From: Octopus bimaculoides
Lineage: Eukaryota
Direction of reading: 5' to 3'
Assembly: GCF_001194135.2 (NCBI RefSeq)
Contig: NC_069000.1
Location: 14,637,705-14,678,044 of the forward strand
Length of the DNA stretch: 40,340 bases
Shown: piece by piece, positions 2,741-20,510 of the stretch
Position numbering within the stretch: position 1 is the stretch's first letter
How the letters are laid out: each line of letters opens with the position of its first letter
Translations under genes and position numbers: made by a program
Notes under the pieces: model-generated
What the model was told of the DNA's origin: nothing
The model's input: the letters and a program-made list of their open reading frames with translations, nothing else
Database searches by the model: none

Positions 2741-3396
2741 GTAAGTTCTTGGTTCTTAATCTTTTACTCTTTTACCTGTTTCAGCTCAATAACTGTGGCC
2801 ATACTGGGTCACCACCGTTGTCATAATTCACCTTCCATCCTTTGAGAGCTTTTACAACATTTGCTTTGAGTTGTGTTAAGTAGACATTAGTGAGATGGAT
2901 TTTGGACATAGTCACAGATTGGTTTGATGAAAAACTTCATCTGTTGGTATGTTACACCACTCAGAAAAGCCATTTATGGATATGTCCCATCTTTTTTTGA
3001 TCATACTATTAGTCTTCTTTTTATTGTTTCAAGTATGATGATGTTGTCATGGCACTGATCTCTAACTATCATTTGAAATAACTAACTCTATGAGAATTAA
3101 ACAGAAAAGAAAGAATGATAATTTCTAATGTTGGTGCATTTCCAGACAGGCTCAGGAGCAGGGGGTGCAAGGGTGCAAGTGCACCTATTTAAATTTTTGG
3201 TGAGACAATGAAGACGCTTTGAACATCATGGATTGAACCTGGATTTACAACCACTAAGCAAATTTCATTCTCACATTTATGTTTCCAGACATGTTGTAGA
3301 TGAAGGGATTTTGTATTACTTCAAAAATTGTAGAGTTGTTTGTGCTTTGTCTAGACATACCATCTCAGATTTCTAGACTAGAAATGTCCATGGCTC

Positions 3397-3680: not shown

Positions 3681-4469
3681 GAATTGGTCTTGGATTCATG
3701 TACTTGCCTGCAATTGTCATGGTTGGTTACTATTTTGATAAAAGAAGAGCCTTAGCAACAGGCATTGCAGTCTGTGGATCTGGTATTGGTAACTTTGTGT
3801 TTGCTCCTATTGCTGAGCTCTTGTTGAAGGAATATGGCTGGCGAGGTTCAATGATGATCACATCAGCTCTCATGCTAAATGGAATAATATTTGGAAGCTT
3901 CTACCGTCCATTAAAACCTCCAAAGAACAAAGATCTCCCTTCGATTCCTTATCAAGCTACTGACAATGAAGTTAAAGAACCTATTATAAGACCAGATGAT
4001 AAACACAAACAGTTGAACCTCCGAATGAAATTTAAAAGGATACATGACATAGAACAAGAAAATTACCATGCAAGAAGACATAGATCATTAGATATCACTG
4101 GCACTGGAAGAACTTTTCTTCCTGGTGTTCTTAATGTTAGCAACAACAAAGAACAATCTAATATTGCCCGAATGGCTGCTAGCCATGATATCTTGCCAAC
4201 ACATTTAAATTCAAAAACTCCAGTAAGACCTACAGTGTCACCATTTTACCGTAAAGATGTCCTGTACAGTGGCAGTCTCTTACGTCTCTCTGAAAAGATG
4301 GAATCACCAAATATGGATGAATTCATATCAAGCATGGTTGTGATTCCTTCAGATGAAGATGATAATAAAAAAAGTTGTATGGAAAAGATTGGAAAAGCTT
4401 TTAAGAAATACAAGGATTTGAAACCAACTTTTTTTCTGTATAGTTTTGCATGTTTTCTTCTTATGCTAG
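3681..4469 (+). CDS. SLC16/MCT exon (TM4-6, large cytoplasmic loop, start of TM7)
   Basis: catttcag|GA..G|gtaagt, 789 nt; GIGLGFMYLPAIVMVGYYFDKRRALATGIAVCGSGIG and YGWRGSMMI are SLC16 signatures. Confidence 0.96.
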
Positions 4470-5084
4470 GTAAGTGCTTCAAGTGATTTTTCCTTAATTA
4501 AGATATTGTTTTGTTTTACTCAGGAACGTTTAGAATTGTATAAAAGATGGACAGAAATAATCATATTTCTTAACAGTTATATAGCAAGCAGGATTTGCTG
4601 TGAACTTTGCTACAATTATCATAAAATTACAAACAATTACAATATTTATTCATGTATAAGTTGCACCCCTTATTTAATGCTAAATTTTGATACAAAAGTT
4701 TTCTCCTTTATAGTTTTTAGTTTTGCCCCATGTACAAATTTCACCCCAGTTTTTCAGTTAAAATCATGTTAAAATCATGATAAAATAGTGTAACTTATAC
4801 ACAAGTAAATTTTGTAAATATATCTTATTAACCTTTAGCACACTGTAGGTGCATCATGTCACCATATGAATTTTCTCCCCTGTAGTTACAGAGCAGTGGC
4901 AGGGGAAAAGATTCTAGAGAAAATGCAATATGCTAAAGAGTAAATAAATTTATTTCAGAATTTTGTATGTGACATCTCAATACTAAACAGCTGGGCTGTA
5001 CTAGCTATGTACCAAGTCAAAGACAAATTTCACTTTAAATATATTTGACCCAGGAAGAACAAACAAGAAAAAAAAATGTATTAG

Positions 5085-5235: not shown

Positions 5236-5471
5236 GACATTAAACAATGATGATGATGATATATACTTGTAAGATCAGCAAAATTCAGCTTGTCCAGGAC
5301 ACCAGCGACACTAGATATGGTCCTGTTTGTAGTTAAAGTGAGGGGTAAATGGATAAACTTAGATAAAAATCGATATAACAAAGATGGAAAATTCTGTTTG
5401 TGTTATCAATGTTTTCCCTGATACTCATAACATAAAATTCATTCATTTTTCTTTCTGTTTCTTCATTCTAG

Positions 5472-5741
5472 GTTTCTTTATTCCTTACACATACTTACCA
5501 TCTGTGGGACTAAGGTTGAATTTTTCCAGAAATCAGTCTGCATTACTCTTATCCATCATTGGGATATCAAACACAGTCTTTCGCATTATCATTGGATGGG
5601 TTAGCGATCAGAAATGGTCAAACTGTTTCATCATTAATTACACATCTTTGCTAGTTTCTGGTATTGCAACAGCATTTGTACCTGTATTTACCAATTATCC
5701 TCTTCTAGTTTCATATTGTGTTGTCTATGGCATCTGTATTG
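5472..5741 (+). CDS. SLC16/MCT exon (TM7-10)
   Basis: cattctag|GT..G|gtaagt, 270 nt; GFFIPYTYLP..LLSIIGISNTVFRIIIGWVSD. Confidence 0.95.
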
Positions 5742-5810
5742 GTAAGTAATTTATTGATTTATTAGTTTCTGTTTTTGAAGTAAAACTGAATAAAATATAA
5801 TTCCTATAAA

Positions 5811-6447
5811 NNNNNNNNNNNNNNNNNNNNNNNNNNNNNNNNNNNNNNNNNNNNNNNNNNNNNNNNNNNNNNNNNNNNNNNNNNNNNNNNNNNNNNNNNN
5901 NNNNNNNNNNNNNNNNNNNNNNNNNNNNNNNNNNNNNNNNNNNNNNNNNNNNNNNNNNNNNNNNNNNNNNNNNNNNNNNNNNNNNNNNNNNNNNNNNNNN
6001 NNNNNNNNNNNNNNNNNNNNNNNNNNNNNNNNNNNNNNNNNNNNNNNNNNNNNNNNNNNNNNNNNNNNNNNNNNNNNNNNNNNNNNNNNNNNNNNNNNNN
6101 NNNNNNNNNNNNNNNNNNNNNNNNNNNNNNNNNNNNNNNNNNNNNNNNNNNNNNNNNNNNNNNNNNNNNNNNNNNNNNNNNNNNNNNNNNNNNNNNNNNN
6201 NNNNNNNNNNNNNNNNNNNNNNNNNNNNNNNNNNNNNNNNNNNNNNNNNNNNNNNNNNNNNNNNNNNNNNNNNNNNNNNNNNNNNNNNNNNNNNNNNNNN
6301 NNNNNNNNNNNNNNNNNNNNNNNNNNNNNNNNNNNNNNNNNNNNNNNNNNNNNNNNNNNNNNNNNNNNNNNNNNNNNNNNNNNNNNNNNNNNNNNNNNNN
6401 NNNNNNNNNNNNNNNNNNNNNNNNNNNNNNNNNNNNNNNNNNNNNNN
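5811..6447. other. Assembly gap (637 N)
   Basis: N run inside an MCT intron. Confidence 1.
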
Positions 6448-6559
6448 TTTAGAAAAATTCTTTTATTCATGCTCCAAACCTTAACTACTTGGCTAAAAAA
6501 TAAAAATGTAATTGACTGATAAGATCATGGCAAGTAGTTTAATTATTTTTCATATTACT

Positions 6560-6722: not shown

Positions 6723-6950
6723 TAGTCAACTCAAATAAATGAGCAATAAAATTCACAATAACAAAGTAGAGAATGTGCACAAGGAATATATTAGTTTGAC
6801 ATTTAGCAAAAAGAGAGTTTTTGACATTCCTAGCAAATATGTATGTGTATGTATATGTACATATATACATATATATATATATACTCACATACATACATAT
6901 ATATGTGTGTGTGTGTGTGTGTGCATACACACACACACATATTTAAAACT

Positions 6951-8422: not shown

Positions 8423-8783
8423 CATATATATATGTGTGTGAGAATGTGAGTGTGTGTGACTGTGTGTGTGTGTGTGTGTGTGTGTGAATGTGTATGTGCG
8501 TGCATGTGTGTGTCTTTGTGATAGTTGTAAACAAGTGTTACCATCATACAAATGGTATTGTTCGTCTTCAGTCTTCCATGAAAACATGTTTAGTCATGGG
8601 TAGATGTCACTTCGCTTGGAAACGAGTGAATGCCACTGAAAATCTGCCTCAAGGAATTCCGTCAGACCCATGCAAGCATGGAATTGTAAACTTTAAACAA
8701 TGATGTATGAATGCTGTTACTGTTTTTATTGACCTTAATAGCTTAACAACTGTTTTTTTTGTTTTTTTTTTTCACTGTTATAG

Positions 8784-12944: not shown

Positions 12945-13047
12945 CTATTTCGTATGAGCAACATTACCAGTGGTAAGGTGGTTGTATTTTATCTGGGAAG
13001 CAATTCGGTCTAAATCCCGACGACCCTGAGAGGTTAAACGGCGACCA
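12945..13047 (-). CDS. RPS19: 40S ribosomal protein S19, exon 6
   Basis: gctttcag|T; GRRLTSQGRRDLDRIASQIKYNHLTTGNVAHTK*; 103 nt, phase fits exon 5. Confidence 0.96.
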
Positions 13048-13682
13048 CTGAAAGCAAACAAAGTGAAATTTTTTTAAATGCAAAATATGGGAGAGTGAAA
13101 AACAAAAATTGAAGAAATATCTTTATCGAATACTAAGGAAAATCCCTTCTAGTGAAGCACCCGATTTCCCTCACCTCCCATGAAACGTGGAAAACAACGT
13201 GAATAAATAAACATTACATTTAACAGTAACCGGAATGCTAAAGGGATAAGAATATTTGTCATTGCTCTGATTCTTGCTGGGTTGGCAGATATCAGCATGC
13301 AACAGCAGATAATTGGTTTGCTGAATTTATAAATAAGAGCCACAAACTCTTGTTAAGATTCATTATTCCAAAGTAGCTTTTGATTGAGAAAACAACGCTG
13401 AAACACCAGGTGTCCCGAAGTCCTTTCACCAATGAATTGAGAATTATGAAAGAAATTACCCCTCTAATAACGAAATACAACAGTGACTAACATTTTTCAT
13501 GTTTGAATGTCATCAATATAATATAAATTACACACACAAACAAACAAACACTGAAATCAATACAAAGTTATTTTCAAGATCTATTAGCATCCTACATTTG
13601 TAATCACCTCATGAGTTTAAAATTTTCCCCATGTGAGGTGAACACCAGCCATAACTTCACCTAAGACTAAAACAGTTCCTAA

Positions 13683-13756
13683 GTGAGATCTCAGATATAT
13701 AGGTCCTCAATTTCTTTTTCAGACAGGGATAACAAAAAATCATCACAGAAACCCAC
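13683..13756 (-). ncRNA. Box C/D snoRNA, snR38/SNORD1 type (copy 1, RPS19 intron 5)
   Basis: C GTGATGA (13746-13740); guide GTTATCCCTGT (13733-13723) antisense to conserved 28S ACAGGGAUAAC; D' CTGA; C' TTGAGGA; D CTGA (13694-13691); terminal stem gtggg/ctcac. Confidence 0.88.
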
Positions 13757-13870
13757 TTTTCATACAAGCTGGCAAAACCCTTCACTTATTTTTTCCAATT
13801 TAACTGAAAAACATTTTAAAGTAAAAATAAAAAGGCTAAGCTAATAGCAAATGAACTACTTTACAGAGAG

Positions 13871-13907
<37 letters not shown>

Positions 13908-13926
13908 AAAGATTTTTAATACATAC

Positions 13927-14041
13927 CCATTGGGATCTTTCTCAACAAGTTTGAGGTTTTCCAGAGCCTGTAAAACACGTCGGGCAATGGAAGCTGAGGC
14001 GGGACAAAAATGACTGGGCACAGTACCATTCCTTTTGCGTC
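13927..14041 (-). CDS. RPS19: 40S ribosomal protein S19, exon 5
   Basis: ttctgtag|GA..GG|gtatgt, 115 nt; [39 protein letters not shown]. Confidence 0.97.
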
Positions 14042-14209
14042 CTACAGAAAGTAAACGTAAATTTTATACGTAGGTAACGTTCTTGCCATTGACGTATTTT
14101 AAATATAAATCCAGAGCAAACTTTAGAAGATATATTGAAAATATTTTTCTGAGAATTTAATGGGAAAATTTACAAACACCCAAATTTCCCAGTTTTGCAT
14201 AAATACAAA

Positions 14210-14279
14210 GTGAGATCTCAGATAGACATGTCCTCAACAATGTCAGACAGGGATAACAAAAGATCATCATAGAACTCAC
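14210..14279 (-). ncRNA. Box C/D snoRNA, snR38/SNORD1 type (copy 2, RPS19 intron 4)
   Basis: C ATGATGA (14270-14264); the same 11-nt guide (14257-14247); D' CTGA; C' TTGAGGA; D CTGA; perfect gtgag/ctcac stem. Spacers differ from copy 1 while boxes and guide are kept. Confidence 0.9.
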
Positions 14280-15389
14280 ATTCCTTACTGTTTAGGGTCT
14301 GCCAAAAGAATGTGTACACACTTCAGGAAAGGAAAAATCCATATAAATAAGTACCTCTAAAAATAGATATCTCTCTTGATGTTTTATCAAACTGCAGTAA
14401 TACTGAGTAAATTGTAATAACACTGGCTTACAATATTCATAGACTTTTTCCTTTCCTGTGCATATGTTTTTATGGCAGACTATCAACAAATGAGATTTGT
14501 ATCTTATTCTGTGAATATTATTCACTCTACAAATTTACTAAGTGCCTACTATAAATTGCACAGAGCTCATCCTCTTGAACTAAATCCAGATTTAACATCA
14601 TCTTCAGAAGTTTAGCAGGTAAGCAATGATGGAAACAGAAATAACTTGTAGATGTAGCTATTATGAGTAATAGCATTGTTTATCAAATGATACAGGAACA
14701 ATGATGACTTGATTCGTAAAGCCTATGAACCATTCAAGGCTTGGAATATAGTCCTACTTACTGATAGATTCTACAACAAAAATCAGGTCAACAATTCTCA
14801 AAAACATTCAAACTTCAGTTGTTGCTAGAAGAAATTTGATAAGTTTTCAGAACCTACCGGAATTAGCATTCGCAGTAGTAAAAACCAGTAATATGGAGAA
14901 AGCCCCCATAAAGGTTGTTCACAAGACCAAGTAACATAAGTCATTTTATGGTAGTACTTGCCAGATAAACTTGTGCATAAATTGCTTTTAACCAAAGTAC
15001 AATTTATTATACAGCAAGTAAATTTTGCAATTTTTAATTATTTACTACAATATTCATTCTATATCGCATTCTGGAGCAAGCAGAATTATTTTCTGCAGCA
15101 TCCACTCAATATGGAAATTTTGTAAAAACTGATACAATCTAAGCATAGGAAATTATCTACAAGAGGTAATGTTTAAAAAAAATAAGGTGCAAAGTGATAG
15201 CTTATTCTCTCACTCAGTATTGCAAGGGAAAGCAAGTCATGATGTTTTTGTAGTTTACCTTACAAAGTCACTCCTATACTACAGAAGCTTTCTTAATGTT
15301 GTCATTAAAAATTAAACATACACAGAAATTTGATTCTTTTACAAAATAGAGAAAACACTGCACCTCTTATATGCATTTCAGTCCACTAT

Positions 15390-15525
15390 GTAGGGTGGTT
15401 GGTGTTAGGAAAGGCATCCAGTCATAAAAACACCATGCCAAAATAGACACAGCAGCCTGATTAGCTCCTGTCAAACCGTACAACCTATGCCAGCATGGAA
15501 GGCTGATGTTAAACAATGAGGATGT
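15390..15525 (+). mobile_element. Degenerate family D retroposon, 3' end
   Basis: ggttggtgttaggaaaggcatccag..gccagcatggaaggctgatgttaaacaatgag. Confidence 0.65.
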
Positions 15526-15720
15526 CTCACTAGAAATGGAACACCTGTGATTTCTAGTTACATATCTTTTAAATTATATCTTATTCAAAGTGACCATATC
15601 TGTTGTTATTTTCAAGATCTATGAGCATCCTACATTTGTAATCACCTCATGAGTTTAAAATTTTCCCCATGTGAGGTGAACACCAGCCATAACTTCACCT
15701 AAGACTAAAACAGTTCCTAA

Positions 15721-15794
15721 ATGAGATCTCAGATATATAGGTCCTCAATTTCTTTTTCAGACAGGGATAACAAAAAATCATCACAGAAACCCAC
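15721..15794 (-). ncRNA. Box C/D snoRNA, snR38/SNORD1 type (copy 3, RPS19 intron 4)
   Basis: Identical to copy 1 except one base in the 3' terminal stem; part of a 202-bp duplication (15605-15806 vs 13567-13768). Confidence 0.85.
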
Positions 15795-16504
15795 TTTTCA
15801 TACAAGAACTGTTAACTTCTCTTACACTACAGCATCCAAAATCTTCCTGAAACTACATTTTACCGAGTTAGAAAGACAAGCTCGACATTTCCCACCAGCT
15901 GAAAAAAGCCACAAATCAGGACTTGGTTCACGAGTCCGGTCAAAGGATCACTCTGCCATCTTTCAGCGAAACCAGTGCACCATTTCCTGCAGAAGATTGG
16001 TTTGAAATTCAAACAACTAAAGTCAAGGAGATGCTCACAGAAACTGAAACCAATTCAAGATGGTTGTGTTAGACTGCAGATTGAGATCTTTCTGTAGGTG
16101 AAGGTTAATTCAGTTTCCACCACTTCACTCAAACTGTATAGGCTAAAGAGTGAAATGCTTGTAACCGAGATAGCTGATGATGACACAGAAGAGTTTCCAA
16201 TGTTGCAATGGCTTCAATCCCCACCAAGAGGAAAGCCTTATCTCTTAAGTAGCTGCTGCAGTTTCACTGGAGTGCTTTAAGTAACCAGTTAATTGTCTGG
16301 CATTTTCATAATTTGCTTTCAACCAATTAACCCAATTTTTTCAGGAAATAGAAAAACTGTCATTTATTATGTACAGAAAGTTATATTTTTAGCAATATCA
16401 TTATCACAATAAAAAGAAACCAAAGCTAAATATACTCAGTTCAAGAATAACTCAAAATGACATTGACCAGTGGAGCCAATATCAAAGCATATGTATATAC
16501 TCAC

Positions 16505-16573
16505 CTCCATATATTTTTGTGAATGCCCCAACACCAACAGGAGATTTAATATATAAATGCCTGCAAACTGAAG
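16505..16573 (-). CDS. RPS19: 40S ribosomal protein S19, exon 4
   Basis: ttttccag|CT..G|gtgagt, 69 nt; ASVCRHLYIKSPVGVGAFTKIYG. Confidence 0.96.
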
Positions 16574-16658
16574 CTGGAAAAAAAAGAAAAAAAAAAATTA
16601 CTCAAAATAATGTTGTCATGGTATTAAAATAAAATGCAGAATTTAATCATGAAATCCA

Positions 16659-16756
16659 TGTTTCAGAAGTCATTTGAACTCATAAGGCATCAAAACTAGC
16701 ACATCTAGTTCCAATATCCTTCAGTATTAGCATGACCAATAATTCATCATTAACAG
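16659..16756 (-). ncRNA. Box C/D snoRNA predicted to guide U6 snRNA A53 2'-O-methylation (SNORD8/9, mgU6-53 type), RPS19 intron 3
   Basis: C ATGATGA (16750-16744); guide GGTCATGCTAAT (16737-16726) pairs 12 bp (one G-U) with U6 AUUAGCAUGGCC; one spacer nt, then D' CTGA (16724-16721); internal hairpin aactag/ctagtt; D CTGA (16666-16663); tgtt/aaca stem; D box 89 nt upstream of the 3' splice site. Confidence 0.82.
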
Positions 16757-16787
16757 AGACCAATGTAAGATTATATATTATATTTAA

Positions 16788-16931
16788 TCCTTTAGTATTC
16801 AAATTATTGTCGAAAGTAATGCTTATTTATTCAGTTTTCCATTTAATTGTGCCTTTGAGATTTTGATGATGTGAATGTATATTATAGGGTAGGTGTGAGA
16901 GGCCAGATATGGCTTGTTTGAATACTAAAGG
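16788..16931 (+). mobile_element. Internally deleted piggyBac-type MITE in RPS19 intron 3
   Basis: TTAA|TCCTTTAGTATT...AATACTAAAGG|TTAT; body matches the family. Confidence 0.65.
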
Positions 16932-16981
16932 TTATCCAAATATCTAAAATACTATATATATATATGTATACATATATTTAC

Positions 16982-17082
16982 CAGCACGTGTATAAAACCA
17001 ATCTTGACTGTAAGGAGCTAATTCATTGAATCTTCCTAATTTTACAATATCAACCCATTCTGGAATTTTCATTTTACCAGAT
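16982..17082 (-). CDS. RPS19: 40S ribosomal protein S19, exon 3
   Basis: ctttacag|A..G|gtaaat, 101 nt; [33 protein letters not shown]. Confidence 0.97.
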
Positions 17083-17886
17083 CTGTAAAGAAAAATGATG
17101 CATTACAAACGAATGTAAGATGAATTATAAAAGAATAAAGATAAATATCAGACAAATTTAATAATAACTTGTTAATTAAGCAAAATCATGAATCCAAAGA
17201 TTTTTGTAAATAGTCCTCCAGATGTAAAATTTATAAAGTATTTTCATTTTGTAAACCCCATAAGGTAGATTATTTACAGCTATAGTTAAGTCTTTTAATT
17301 TTGAAGTCTTTTCTACATTGCAAGAACTGCTAACCAAACTGACAGATACTAACCAGTTATTAAAAACAAGTCACCTTTACATCAGTTTGTCATGAAAATT
17401 CAAACTTTTAAATTCATAAACTACATATCATTGGAGAAAAGGGAAACAAAAATACAAATCACTCAAGACACATTCGTCAGCCTATACAGAGACTAATCTT
17501 TAATGTATTCCAATAGCCAACGGAAAAAAAAAATACTGTACTTAAACTGGCCAAATGATGAAAAAGCATAGCCTCTATTTGACAGGCTAACGTTTTTGCC
17601 TAATATCCATTTACAACAAATCTAAATAACATTATCAAAGAACAAATCTTTGGAACATAAAATTCCTCACTGGCCACAGATTGACAGAAGGGGAAGTGAA
17701 ACTCCAAGATCGCCCAAGTGGGAACTGCAGTCCCTTTCATTCCAAGTTCGTATTAGAATTGAGCCATTAAGCTGCAATTCTTTTCTTGTTCTATGACCCA
17801 TAATATACAAAGTTTTAAATTCAACTTTGTATTCACAAATATAAATATACCAAGTTTTCCTGGCAAAATAGAAAAAGTATACTAAC

Positions 17887-17954
17887 CTTTTCAGAAAAGC
17901 ACCCAATGCTTTTGTGAATTCATGTTGGTCAACATCTTTGACACTAACGCCAGT
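17887..17954 (-). CDS. RPS19: 40S ribosomal protein S19, exon 2
   Basis: ttttatag|ACT..AG|gttagt, 68 nt; TGVSVKDVDQHEFTKALGAFLK. Confidence 0.96.
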
Positions 17955-19371
17955 CTATAAAATAAAACTCTCAATATTAGTTACTAGTCTTTCACGTTTT
18001 ACTTGCTTTCAACTATTTCCTGTGACCTAACACTATCTCTTAGAGACCTGGCAACTAGGGAGTTAAGGAGCTAATAGAAATCGCACACTTATTTCTAAAA
18101 GGCATCCTAAATAGAATAAAGAACACCCTTGTTTTCGTTAAAGTAATTTTTAAAAAATTAAATTCTATTTTAATATTCTTTAGGCTACCGCTTCTATTAT
18201 GGCGTTTTGGAATGACCGCAAAGTTGGTTAATACTTTGTGTATTAAAAAAATGTTTGTCTCTAAATTACCTACAGGTGCTTGTTTGTGTATACACATTTT
18301 GTGAGACGGACGTCACAGAAAAAATTTACTGGAAAAGGGAACGGAATTTAAAATGTAAAAACCAAAATCAAATTTACGGGGACAAAAATTATGGGTATAC
18401 GTAGAAACAATCATCTATTTCTTGTAATTTTCCTTCTCCATGAGGTAAGCTATTCAGGGGTTACACCCGTCTGGTGAGACGGTGTAAGAGTAAAAATTTC
18501 CTATCAAAAACTACACCAGGATATAGTTAATTTTGAAGATACATGAATTAGGGGAGTTTAAAAATAAAAGATGGGAAAGCAATTGCTTAAATTTTAGAAA
18601 ACTTTAATTTACACCTTCCCGCTAAAAAGCATGCAATGCTTTGAACGGGTTTTATTTCGAATTATGAAATTAAAAATATGTCACATGTTTCATGGCCGTT
18701 TTTCTAAAACTATTTTTGGGTAAAAAAAAAAATTTAATTCCTTAAACGACTAAATAATAATATAACCGAAGTTTTTAAGATTTTTATTATAAAAAAAAAA
18801 ATGTCAAGATATTTTTTTAATCAGTATATAATTAGATGTGCATGAACTTTAGAAAACATTGAAATCTGTGCGCACACGTACCTTTATAGTTAAACACAAT
18901 AATACCCTCACTCTAGAAAATTCGATGATCAGTAAAAAGAAAATCTTTTAAGTCTTAATTTAATAAAATAGGAGGACTTGAACTGCTTGACGTAATTTCG
19001 AGATTCGCTATTTTAGATGAACGATAGGGATATTTCTGATATCATTTAAATGGATAATATATAAAAACCGTTTAAAATGTATATTCAAACACACATAAAT
19101 CATTTATATAAACAAGAGACATACGTAAGATTGACTAAAGCAAATAACTACTTCAACTAAGAAAAGCCATTTCATCAATGTGGATGAAGTGGACAACGTG
19201 ACGGATATTAAACCAACAAAATATGAAGCAGCAAGATGATATTATGTCTCTAAATTTATAAACAACTTTCGGGGGGTACATAATCAGTTAATTAATACGT
19301 TAAAGTTATTTTTAAAATTTGTTTAAGATATATATTTTCAGTAAAAGTAAGAGAAGGTGTACACGACGTAC

Positions 19372-19389
19372 CTTGCGCTCGGAAGCCAT
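19372..19389 (-). CDS. RPS19: 40S ribosomal protein S19, exon 1 (MASERK)
   Basis: ATG GCT TCC GAG CGC AAG|gtacgt, phase 0 into exon 2; the six exons total 474 nt (157 aa + stop). Confidence 0.85.
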
Positions 19390-19809: not shown

Positions 19810-19848
19810 ATGTTCTTTTTCCCTTCTCGACTTCATTTCATTTCGTAA
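19810..19848 (+). promoter_or_regulatory. 12-codon uORF (MFFFPSRLHFIS*) whose TAA overlaps the N6AMT1 ATG
   Basis: caacATG at 19810 (A at -3); stop TAA at 19846-19848; main ATG at 19848-19850. Confidence 0.5.
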
Positions 19849-20510
19849 TGTTTTCTACACCAAACTTCTCACACATATCTTCAAAAGATTACGAAAAAAT
19901 TTATGAACCAGCAGAGGACACTTTTCTTTTGCTTGATGCAATCGAGAAGGACTTTTCTTTTATCAAAAGCCGACAACCATTCATTTGCGTTGAGATAGGA
20001 TGTGGCAGTGGTGTTCCTTTAGTATTTTTAGCCCGTCTTCTGGGACCATCTTCGTTTTATATATGCACAGACATTAACAGAGCAGCAGTACAGATCGCCC
20101 GTGATACGGCATTTCACAACGATGTGGTCGTTGAAGCAGTGGAAACTGATTTAATGTCTGGACTACTTCCGAGACTTTCAAACAAAGTAGATATTCTGTT
20201 ATTTAACCCGCCTTACGTGCCGACACCAAGTGATGATATCAAGTTTAATGCTGCCGATCCCGTCGTAGCCTCGTGGGCCGGAGGCACCAAAGGACGTGAA
20301 GTCATGGATAGACTTTTCCCTCTTGTCCCCCACATTCTGTCCGAAACAGGGATACTTTATTTAGTGGCTGTTGCCGAAAACGATCCGCCAGATATTCTTA
20401 AAACTATGAATAGTTATGGACTGTGCGCTGAAACAGTCATTTCTCGTCGCTCTGGACCTGAGCTACTCAGTGTAATAAGATTTACCAAAAAGTCGATTGT
20501 AAATAAATAA
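19848..20510 (+). CDS. N6AMT1: HemK family methyltransferase N6AMT1/HEMK2 (eRF1 glutamine methyltransferase), intronless CDS
   Basis: 220 aa uninterrupted ORF with YEPAEDTFLLLDA, SAM motif VEIGCGSG, NPPY motif (LLFNPPYVPT) and WAGGTKGREVMDRLFP. An AATAAA (20502-20507) overlaps the last codons. Confidence 0.96.
   Translation: MFSTPNFSHISSKDYEKIYEPAEDTFLLLDAIEKDFSFIKSRQPFICVEIGCGSGVPLVFLARLLGPSSFYICTDINRAAVQIARDTAFHNDVVVEAVETDLMSGLLPRLSNKVDILLFNPPYVPTPSDDIKFNAADPVVASWAGGTKGREVMDRLFPLVPHILSETGILYLVAVAENDPPDILKTMNSYGLCAETVISRRSGPELLSVIRFTKKSIVNK

Follow-up and report, generated by a model that had tools for sequence, protein, structure and literature searches.

The stretch of DNA analysed here, which we call the window, comprises 40,340 nucleotides (nt) of the Octopus bimaculoides genome (contig NC_069000.1, positions 14,637,705 to 14,678,044 of the forward strand), and it carries on its minus strand the gene for the ribosomal protein RPS19 (eS19). 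The coding region is interrupted by five introns (Table 1), and its spliced product matches the Octopus RPS19 protein P0001 (PF01090) from end to end with 99% identity. Intron 3 of this gene contains a predicted box C/D small nucleolar RNA (snoRNA) that resembles mgU6-53 (SNORD8 and SNORD9), the guide for 2'-O-methylation of A53 in the human spliceosomal U6 RNA (PMC7960923; PMC5855946). Such an RNA had been proposed from the sequence alone, at 16659-16756 and within a ribosomal protein gene; the coordinates and anatomy given in this original prediction proved correct, with the element lying on the minus strand, and its host is indeed a ribosomal protein gene, as tblastn and the spliced product both indicate.

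Results

Anatomy and position of the intronic element

Read on the minus strand from 16759 to 16655, the element has UCUC upstream of the UGUU that opens it and UGGA downstream of the AACA that closes it. It possesses the general features of a box C/D RNA: a C box of the form RUGAUGA near the 5' end, a D box CUGA near the 3' end, and a short terminal stem of 4 base pairs (bp) that can be extended to 7 bp. Internally there is a D' box, CUGA, together with two candidates for the C' box, UGAUGC and UGAGUU, of which the latter is probably the C' box in a degenerate form, judging from its place relative to the hairpin. In its sequence architecture the element is thus a complete box C/D snoRNA.

Within intron 3 the distance of the RNA is 226 nt to the 5' splice site and 85 nt to the 3' splice site, the latter counted from the 3' end of the RNA at 16659 to the last intron base at 16574. 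Animal box C/D RNAs are processed best, in a manner coupled to splicing, when they lie approximately 70-80 nt before the 3' splice site (Hirose and Steitz 2001, cited in PMC2780460), a value close to that found here, and the canonical spacing that had been claimed for the element is therefore borne out.

Table 1. Features of RPS19 and of the snoRNA in its third intron; positions are those of the window.
Feature	Position	Strand	Basis or remark
RPS19 (eS19) coding region, ATG to stop, six exons	12945-19389	-	tblastn and sequence reading
RPS19 exons	19389-19372, 17954-17887, 17082-16982, 16573-16505, 14041-13927, 13047-12945	-	
RPS19 start codon, ATG	19389	-	
RPS19 stop codon	12947-12945	-	
RPS19 exon 3	16982-17082	-	tblastn, sequence reading
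RPS19 exon 4 (ASVCRHLYIKSPVGVGAFTKIYGG)	16505-16573	-	tblastn, sequence reading
Host intron 3 of RPS19, 408 nt	16574-16981	-	GT at 16981-16980, AG at 16575-16574; flanking exons by tblastn
Predicted mature box C/D snoRNA, about 97 nt, octopus mgU6-53 / SNORD8-9 type	16659-16755	-	sequence reading; Rfam snoU6-53 match at 16658-16755
Terminal stem, 5' strand UGUU	16752-16755	-	minimum-free-energy fold and Rfam structure line
Possible extension of terminal stem, UCU with GGA	16759-16757 with 16657-16655	-	minimum-free-energy fold, Rfam structure line
C box AUGAUGA, one A after UGUU	16744-16750	-	direct reading; high posterior against the C box of the model
Stretch from C box to D' box, AUUAUUGGUCAUGCUAAUA	16743-16725	-	direct reading
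Antisense element GGUCAUGCUAAU	16726-16737	-	pairs with U6 nt 61-50; U16729 faces A53, U16735 faces G59 (wobble)
D' box CUGA	16721-16724	-	direct reading; invariant column block in alignment A2
Internal hairpin AGGAUAUUGGAACUAGAUGUGCUAGUUUUGAUGCCU, 36 nt, 15 bp and one bulge	16685-16720	-	folds; begins directly after D'
C'-like hexamer UGAUGC in 3' arm of hairpin	16692-16687	-	second C' candidate
UGAGUU, family-conserved hexamer, probable C' box	16677-16682	-	2 nt (UA) past hairpin; aligned to UGAGUU of Rfam consensus
Spacer CAAAUGACUU, 10 nt, from UGAGUU to D box	16667-16676	-	part of the second guide proposed originally
D box CUGA	16663-16666	-	direct reading; Rfam alignment
Terminal stem, 3' strand AACA	16659-16662	-	Rfam alignment, minimum-free-energy fold

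Complementarity to U6 around A53

The original prediction had paired the D' guide with U6 nt 50-61 and placed the fifth nucleotide upstream of D' on A53, and both statements were upheld. The antisense element GGUCAUGCUAAU, which lies directly upstream of D' and exceeds the 10 nt expected of a SNORD8-9 guide, forms 12 bp with U6 A50-C61, one of them a G59.U wobble, and U16729, the fifth nucleotide from D', stands opposite A53. The calculated energy of this duplex, -18.7 kcal/mol, was reached by none of 2000 shuffled guides. The target stretch, nt 50-61, we take to be AUUAGCAUGGCC. The composite pattern TGATGA-N9-CATGCTAATNCTGA, searched with two mismatches allowed, occurs once in the 40-kb window, where 0.01 occurrences are expected from dinucleotide shuffles. 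Further, the core CAUGCUAAU is invariant in every relative that we found, from plants (the snoR53Y consensus) to a bird and a butterfly, which argues that the U6 target is invariant as well; the U6 of octopus would be expected to follow the metazoan consensus.

Family assignment

We compared the element with the Rfam families. The best of these was snoU6-53 (RF00377, snoU6-53/MBII-28), with 27.2 bits (E = 9e-4 in 601 nt and 0.011 in 7.5 kb), while the snoR53Y model (RF01279, gathering score 43 bits) gave 15.2 bits (E = 9.1). Matches to mir-2834, snoCD11 and snoZ105 on the same stretch were at chance level (E = 0.56-7) and were rejected. The proposed relationship to SNORD8/9 is thus supported as regards the best family; the gathering score of snoU6-53, 36 bits, is not attained. 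The similarity extends to the D'-to-D stretch, from which the guide is excluded: it aligned above shuffled sequences with both the Rfam consensus (p = 0.024) and one of the relatives described below, L039 (p = 0.0005), so the resemblance is not limited to the guide that was used in the search for relatives. The central hairpin and spacing invoked in the original prediction likewise agree with the family, in that the hairpin (16720-16685) begins directly after D' and is followed by UA and then by UGAGUUCAAAUGACUU, in which the UGAGUU..AA..CUUCU arrangement of SNORD8-9 can be recognized; the 3' part of that arrangement (CUCauaugaagAc) is absent.

The vertebrate RNAs share with the octopus RNA (i) an intronic location, (ii) the D' guide CAUGCUAAU-N-CUGA with A53 at its fifth position, and (iii) a hairpin directly after D' with UGAGUU beyond it, the following AA..ACUUCU being partly matched in octopus. 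They differ in that the octopus D side is approximately 13-23 nt shorter, its D box coming directly after ACUU, and in that the octopus guide has GGU where the vertebrate guide has GCC, resulting in the G59.U wobble and an extra pair with C61. The clan CL00080, which contains yeast snR53, plant snoR53Y and Neurospora crassa CD11, has the core CCAUGCUAAU upstream of D', as does octopus, and for its plant and Neurospora members a U6 target corresponding to human A53 has been assigned. Unlike the octopus RNA, however, these RNAs are short and lack the long internal hairpin, 18S ribosomal RNA (Am796/Am801) is the main target documented for them, and the octopus guide is extended toward U6, with GG opposite C60-C61, rather than toward 18S. 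The other nucleolar box C/D guides, associated in mammals with LARP7, for the region of U6 near ACAGAGA and the internal stem-loop (ISL), namely SNORD7 (mgU6-47), SNORD10, SNORD67 and SNORD94, differ in guide and target nucleotide and show no similarity by Rfam.

Conservation within Octopus

In both O. vulgaris and O. sinensis, a 104-nt segment containing the element is found in the same intron without a single substitution, whereas 19 of 285 aligned sites (6.7%) differ in the rest of intron 3, which in addition contains 60 indel columns; the probability of finding no change in 104 nt is approximately 8e-4. The RPS19 introns as a whole are approximately 83-88% identical to those of the two other species, a divergence from which the window would belong to a third species. 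Judged from these alignments, the element is under purifying conservation. Cephalopod-like RPS19 sequences from outside Octopus (P0025; loci L006-L008) are intronless and transcript-like, and are therefore uninformative for an intronic guide. In the literature, snoU6-53 is not listed in the supplements of the giant-squid genome paper, and no description of an A53 guide from a mollusc was found.

Relatives in other animals

Relatives were collected in two ways, by a metagenome scan for the C box-guide-D' pattern and by fetching loci through CHD-type proteins. Most of the 120 metagenome matches proved to be bacterial coding DNA, with TGATGA…GCTAAT in frame, and were discarded; a dozen were bona fide C/D RNAs, with snoU6-53 scores of 26.5-41.9 bits. 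The CHD-type loci yielded copies of 48.6 bits in an eukaryote (L131), 32.7 bits in the butterfly Danaus chrysippus (L130), and 30.2 bits in the bird Upupa epops (L132, at CHD8). The scores of the relatives overall, 26.5-48.6 bits, bracket that of octopus; the bird copy, a CHD8-hosted vertebrate one, is also below the gathering score, and the octopus score falls inside the real range of the family.

The invertebrate and unassigned relatives (L020, L040, L052, L128, L131, L130, L117, L039 and L108) have the C box, the guide, the D' box and the hairpin-UGNGUU arrangement of octopus. A hairpin directly after D', then 2 nt, then UG(A/C/U)GUU is common to octopus, the Rfam consensus, L117, L020, L052 and L128; the hexamer is UGAGUU at the matching position in L039 and L117, and UGCGUU or UGUGUU in L020, L052, L040, L128 and L131. 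The hairpins at this place are of other sequence in the Rfam consensus, L117, L020, L052 and L128, and their stems differ accordingly, being AGG-AUAUUGGAACUAG in octopus, GACACC…GGGUGU in vertebrates and AGAGAU…GAUCUUU in the L020 group. Some particulars of the octopus RNA recur singly among these relatives: L040 has a U opposite G59, L039 has AUGAGUUCAA, and both L117 and the bird copy have a short D side.

Matches to further small RNAs were seen at three of these loci. In L131, four SNORD36 copies (plus strand, 3321-3395, 3963-4037, 6869-6946 and 8640-8717; 43.6-48.5 bits, all above the gathering score) occupy neighbouring introns of the CHD7/8-like gene. The kismet/CHD7-like locus of D. chrysippus has a mir-965 precursor upstream (L130, 550-622; 59 bits, above the gathering score). 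The contig L117 has a mir-30-like hairpin (4684-4763; 36.8 bits, where the gathering score is 50.2), an indication that this contig may come from an animal.

Host genes of the relatives

The host of the vertebrate SNORD8/9 RNAs is CHD8 (PMC6466398), in contrast to RPS19 in octopus, and in this informal respect, the CHD7/8-type location common to vertebrate and invertebrate relatives, the octopus RNA departs from the family. The exons beside L020 and L052 encode Helicase_C and their source names a 'chromodomain-helicase-DNA-binding protein 7'; the copies in L131, D. chrysippus and the bird CHD8 locus lie in introns of CHD7/8-type helicase genes, and L039 lies between the SWIRM and SANT exons of a SMARCC-like gene. 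None of the relatives found adjoins RPS19 exons. Conversely, no A53-type guide was found, with two mismatches allowed, in the RPS19 loci of a chiton (L003), a scallop (L004) or a snail (L005), and the loci of O. vulgaris, O. sinensis, the chiton and the snail gave no match at the Rfam gathering score. Since the relatives sit in CHD7/8-type genes and the RPS19 loci of chiton, scallop and snail are without the guide, the RPS19 location appears to be derived. The simplest reading of these sequences is that a CHD7/8 intron would be the old home of the guide and that the copy in RPS19 originated on the branch that led to Octopus. Protein searches for CHD7/8 returned only exon-sized fragments or fragments of at most 550 amino acids, with no Octopus entry among them.

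Other features of the locus

Three further box C/D copies, of the snoR38 type (Rfam RF00213), lie on the minus strand in RPS19, at 15722-15793 and 14211-14278 (intron 4) and at 13684-13755 (intron 5), so that RPS19 is a multi-snoRNA host in this window. They score 39.3, 45.6 and 39.3 bits, respectively, and have the guide GUUAUCCCUGUCUGA. Two of them share one intron, and their distances from the 3' splice site, 168 to approximately 1700 nt, are unlike that of the U6-53-type RNA. A segment of approximately 200-240 nt, comprising one such copy and its flanks, is nearly exactly duplicated between intron 4 (~15803-15562) and intron 5 (~13765-13567), both on the minus strand. Just upstream of RPS19 exon 3, O. 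vulgaris (L001, 12938-13048) and O. sinensis (L002, 12951-13061) have an extra snoR38-type copy that is 99% identical to the window copy at 14294-14184; there is no insert at this place in the window (17116/17114), from which we conclude that snoRNA copies move between RPS19 introns.

Upstream of the RPS19 start codon there is a motif, CCTTTCT (~19402-19396), resembling a terminal oligopyrimidine (TOP) start. An intronless open reading frame (ORF) of 220 amino acids (19848-20510, plus strand) with a small methyltransferase domain (PF05175, MTS) and an NPPY motif, by our reading presumably N6AMT1/HemK2-like, is arranged head-to-head with RPS19, and the two starts are approximately 460 nt apart, suggesting a bidirectional promoter. 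Two exons of an MFS_1 (major-facilitator) transporter gene are found at 3698-4486 and 5384-5749 on the plus strand, and this neighbour was also called at the O. vulgaris and O. sinensis loci. The assembly has gaps, with a total of 812 N, at ~2300-2500 and ~5770-6450. Much of the window consists of long microsatellites of the (TA)n, (CA)n and TATG types, which are the source of most of the long mechanical ORFs.

The intronless cephalopod-like RPS19 sequences mentioned above (L006-L008; Logan contigs SRR8281664, SRR8281693 and SRR20545806) are approximately 79-81% identical in nucleotides to the octopus exons and are preceded by about 1.1 kb of noncoding DNA that includes a TOP-like start. They may derive from another cephalopod-like animal, either as a processed retrocopy or as the contig of a chimeric transcript.

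Discussion

Interpretation of the element and points against it

The architecture of the element, its complementarity to U6, its similarity to the family outside the guide, its invariance within Octopus and its place in the intron together make it very probable that intron 3 of RPS19 encodes a functional box C/D snoRNA, which corresponds in octopus to vertebrate mgU6-53 (SNORD8/SNORD9); the core of the original prediction, a guide for U6 A53 in a cephalopod ribosomal protein intron, is thereby supported as far as sequence evidence reaches. Several observations weigh on the other side. The Rfam search reported no match for the element at its default (gathering) threshold, which exceeds the score obtained. 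The guide contains the G.U wobble opposite G59, and the U6 with which it was paired was a reference sequence and not octopus U6. This reference sequence has the right base at eight of eight published positions of 2'-O-methylation, namely A47, A53, G54, C60, C62, C63, A70 and C77 (PMC5855946), and agrees with the quantitative PCR primers printed in another study (PMC11863803). The three Octopus species are close, with intron 3 approximately 92% identical overall among them, so that conservation within the genus is only a moderate test. Lastly, as it lies outside the CHD7/8 host of its relatives, the octopus RNA could have arisen recently as an additional copy, whose activity would be uncertain.

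Alternative explanations

The stretch adjoining the D box had been considered an orphan second guide in the original prediction, a suggestion that the analysis does not support: gagttcaaatgactt consists of the conserved UGAGUU, the probable C' box, and the 10-nt spacer, and has no complementarity to U6. The best duplex of the C'-D region with U6 (-7.0 kcal/mol) was matched by 80% of shuffled sequences (p = 0.8), and this comparison gave no target. That the D-box side, UGAGUUCAAAUGACUU, might be an independent guide for another RNA draws some support from the use of both guides in many C/D snoRNAs and from the conservation of its 5' part across phyla, which suggests some constraint; this conserved part, however, is the UGAGUU found 2 nt past the D'-C' hairpin in every relative, that is, in the place of a C' box, and the remaining 10 nt are not conserved, with GAUUUAAAAGAA in L117 and approximately 25 unrelated or longer nucleotides in vertebrates and the L020 group. 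We thus regard such a second guide as improbable, and conclude from the comparison that the D-box half (the D'-C' hairpin, UGAGUU and the 10-nt spacer) would have a structural rather than a guiding part. We also considered an accessory pairing, in which the vertebrate D-side consensus cuaaaCUUCUC would pair with U6 G44-G54 (10 of 11 positions), abutting or overlapping the D' target and thereby lengthening the guide duplex. The energies were not significant relative to shuffles (p = 0.095 for the consensus, 0.35 for L020, 0.64 for L040 and 0.90 for octopus, in which the feature is absent), and for this reason the idea was dropped.

The 18S ribosomal RNA of many eukaryotes also contains AUUAGCAUGG, and it is possible on that account that the same D' element directs methylation both of U6 A53 and of the 18S equivalent of yeast A796 and Arabidopsis A801. 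Precedents for such a dual guide exist, since Arabidopsis snoR53Y has been assigned to 18S-A801 and to U6-A48, which corresponds to human A53 (PMC8053127), and the single D' guide of N. crassa CD11 to 18S-Am793 and a U6 site (PMC2780460). The Rfam snoR53Y consensus contains CCAUGCUAAUgCUGA, the octopus RNA has its weak match to that model, and L108 is recognized by both models (36.1 and 32.5 bits). By direct reading, however, the octopus guide forms 10 bp at most on 18S of the AUUAGCAUGGAAU or AUUAGCAUGGAA type, because the GG at 16737-16736 fits U6 C60-C61 and not the A-A of 18S. On the 5' side of GCAUGG the 18S sequence differs between animals, which likewise speaks against a second target, and the octopus RNA scores far higher with snoU6-53 than with snoR53Y. 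A dual guide therefore seems to us unlikely, if less so than a second guide on the D side. Least probable of the explanations considered is that the element is inactive, escaping processing or failing to guide methylation, whether as a decayed retroposed copy or as a C/D-like motif that arose by chance in an AT-rich intron. The score under the Rfam threshold, the host that differs from that of the relatives, and the duplicated snoRNA copies in RPS19 introns, which indicate local turnover, could all be explained in this way. Against it stand the intact boxes, terminal stem, hairpin and guide; the lack of any change in three species where the flanks have diverged; the small number of such patterns expected by chance; a distance to the 3' splice site near the processing optimum; and the bird CHD8 copy, which is likewise below threshold.

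Proposed function

If the element is the functional counterpart of mgU6-53, the RNA would be transcribed within the RPS19 pre-mRNA and released from the spliced intron 3 by debranching and by exonucleolytic trimming up to a ribonucleoprotein (snoRNP) that Snu13, Nop56/58 and fibrillarin would form on the C/D kink-turn; a distance of 85 nt to the 3' splice site agrees with an assembly coupled to splicing. The 12-nt element upstream of D' would then pair with nt 50-61 of the U6 small nuclear RNA, and the D'-side fibrillarin would place a 2'-O-methyl group on A53, which faces the fifth guide position, during the nucleolar passage of U6, with the D-box half presumably carrying no second guide. The mammalian U6 guides depend on LARP7, as the original prediction had stated, and are bridged by it to U6 (PMC11863803); by analogy a LARP7 orthologue may bridge the octopus RNA.

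Evolution of the guide and its host

The guides for U6 that one study describes in Drosophila are mgU6-47 and mgU6-68 (PMC3884663), the former also being known from Schizosaccharomyces pombe, and for the 18S site yeast snR53 and plant snoR53Y have been traced to the last eukaryotic common ancestor (PMC3511168). As A53 guides are documented in vertebrates, Arabidopsis and Neurospora, one would be expected in invertebrates, and the octopus RNA adds a predictable, hitherto undescribed member to an old family. A guide known from vertebrates, plants and fungi is now extended to cephalopods, suggesting that animals at large retain U6 Am53, a modification adjacent to the catalytic ACAGAGA/ISL region. 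Our understanding of how such guides work is unchanged by this RNA; the locus offers a concrete place at which U6 modification can be studied in an animal noted for its unusual RNA biology.

More speculatively, the octopus lineage may have moved, or added, a U6-A53 guide that is normally fixed in a CHD7/8 intron just downstream of the helicase exons (in the bird, the butterfly and several invertebrates) into a TOP-type ribosomal protein gene, placing the supply of the Am53 guide under the control of ribosome biogenesis; at the same time the octopus RNA and L108 may bridge snoU6-53 and the snR53/snoR53Y clan as one ancient family, in which a single antisense element could serve 18S ribosomal RNA and U6, both of which contain AUUAGCAUGG. 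We advance this combined proposal as a tentative one, which we think somewhat more probable than dual targeting by the octopus guide itself and still well short of an even chance. The comparative result on the hosts is of more interest than the locus itself: with a CHD7/8 host in very distant animals and RPS19 in Octopus, the guide would offer a clean example of the relocation of a snoRNA between host genes, and the change of host may have brought with it a change in the regulation of guide abundance.

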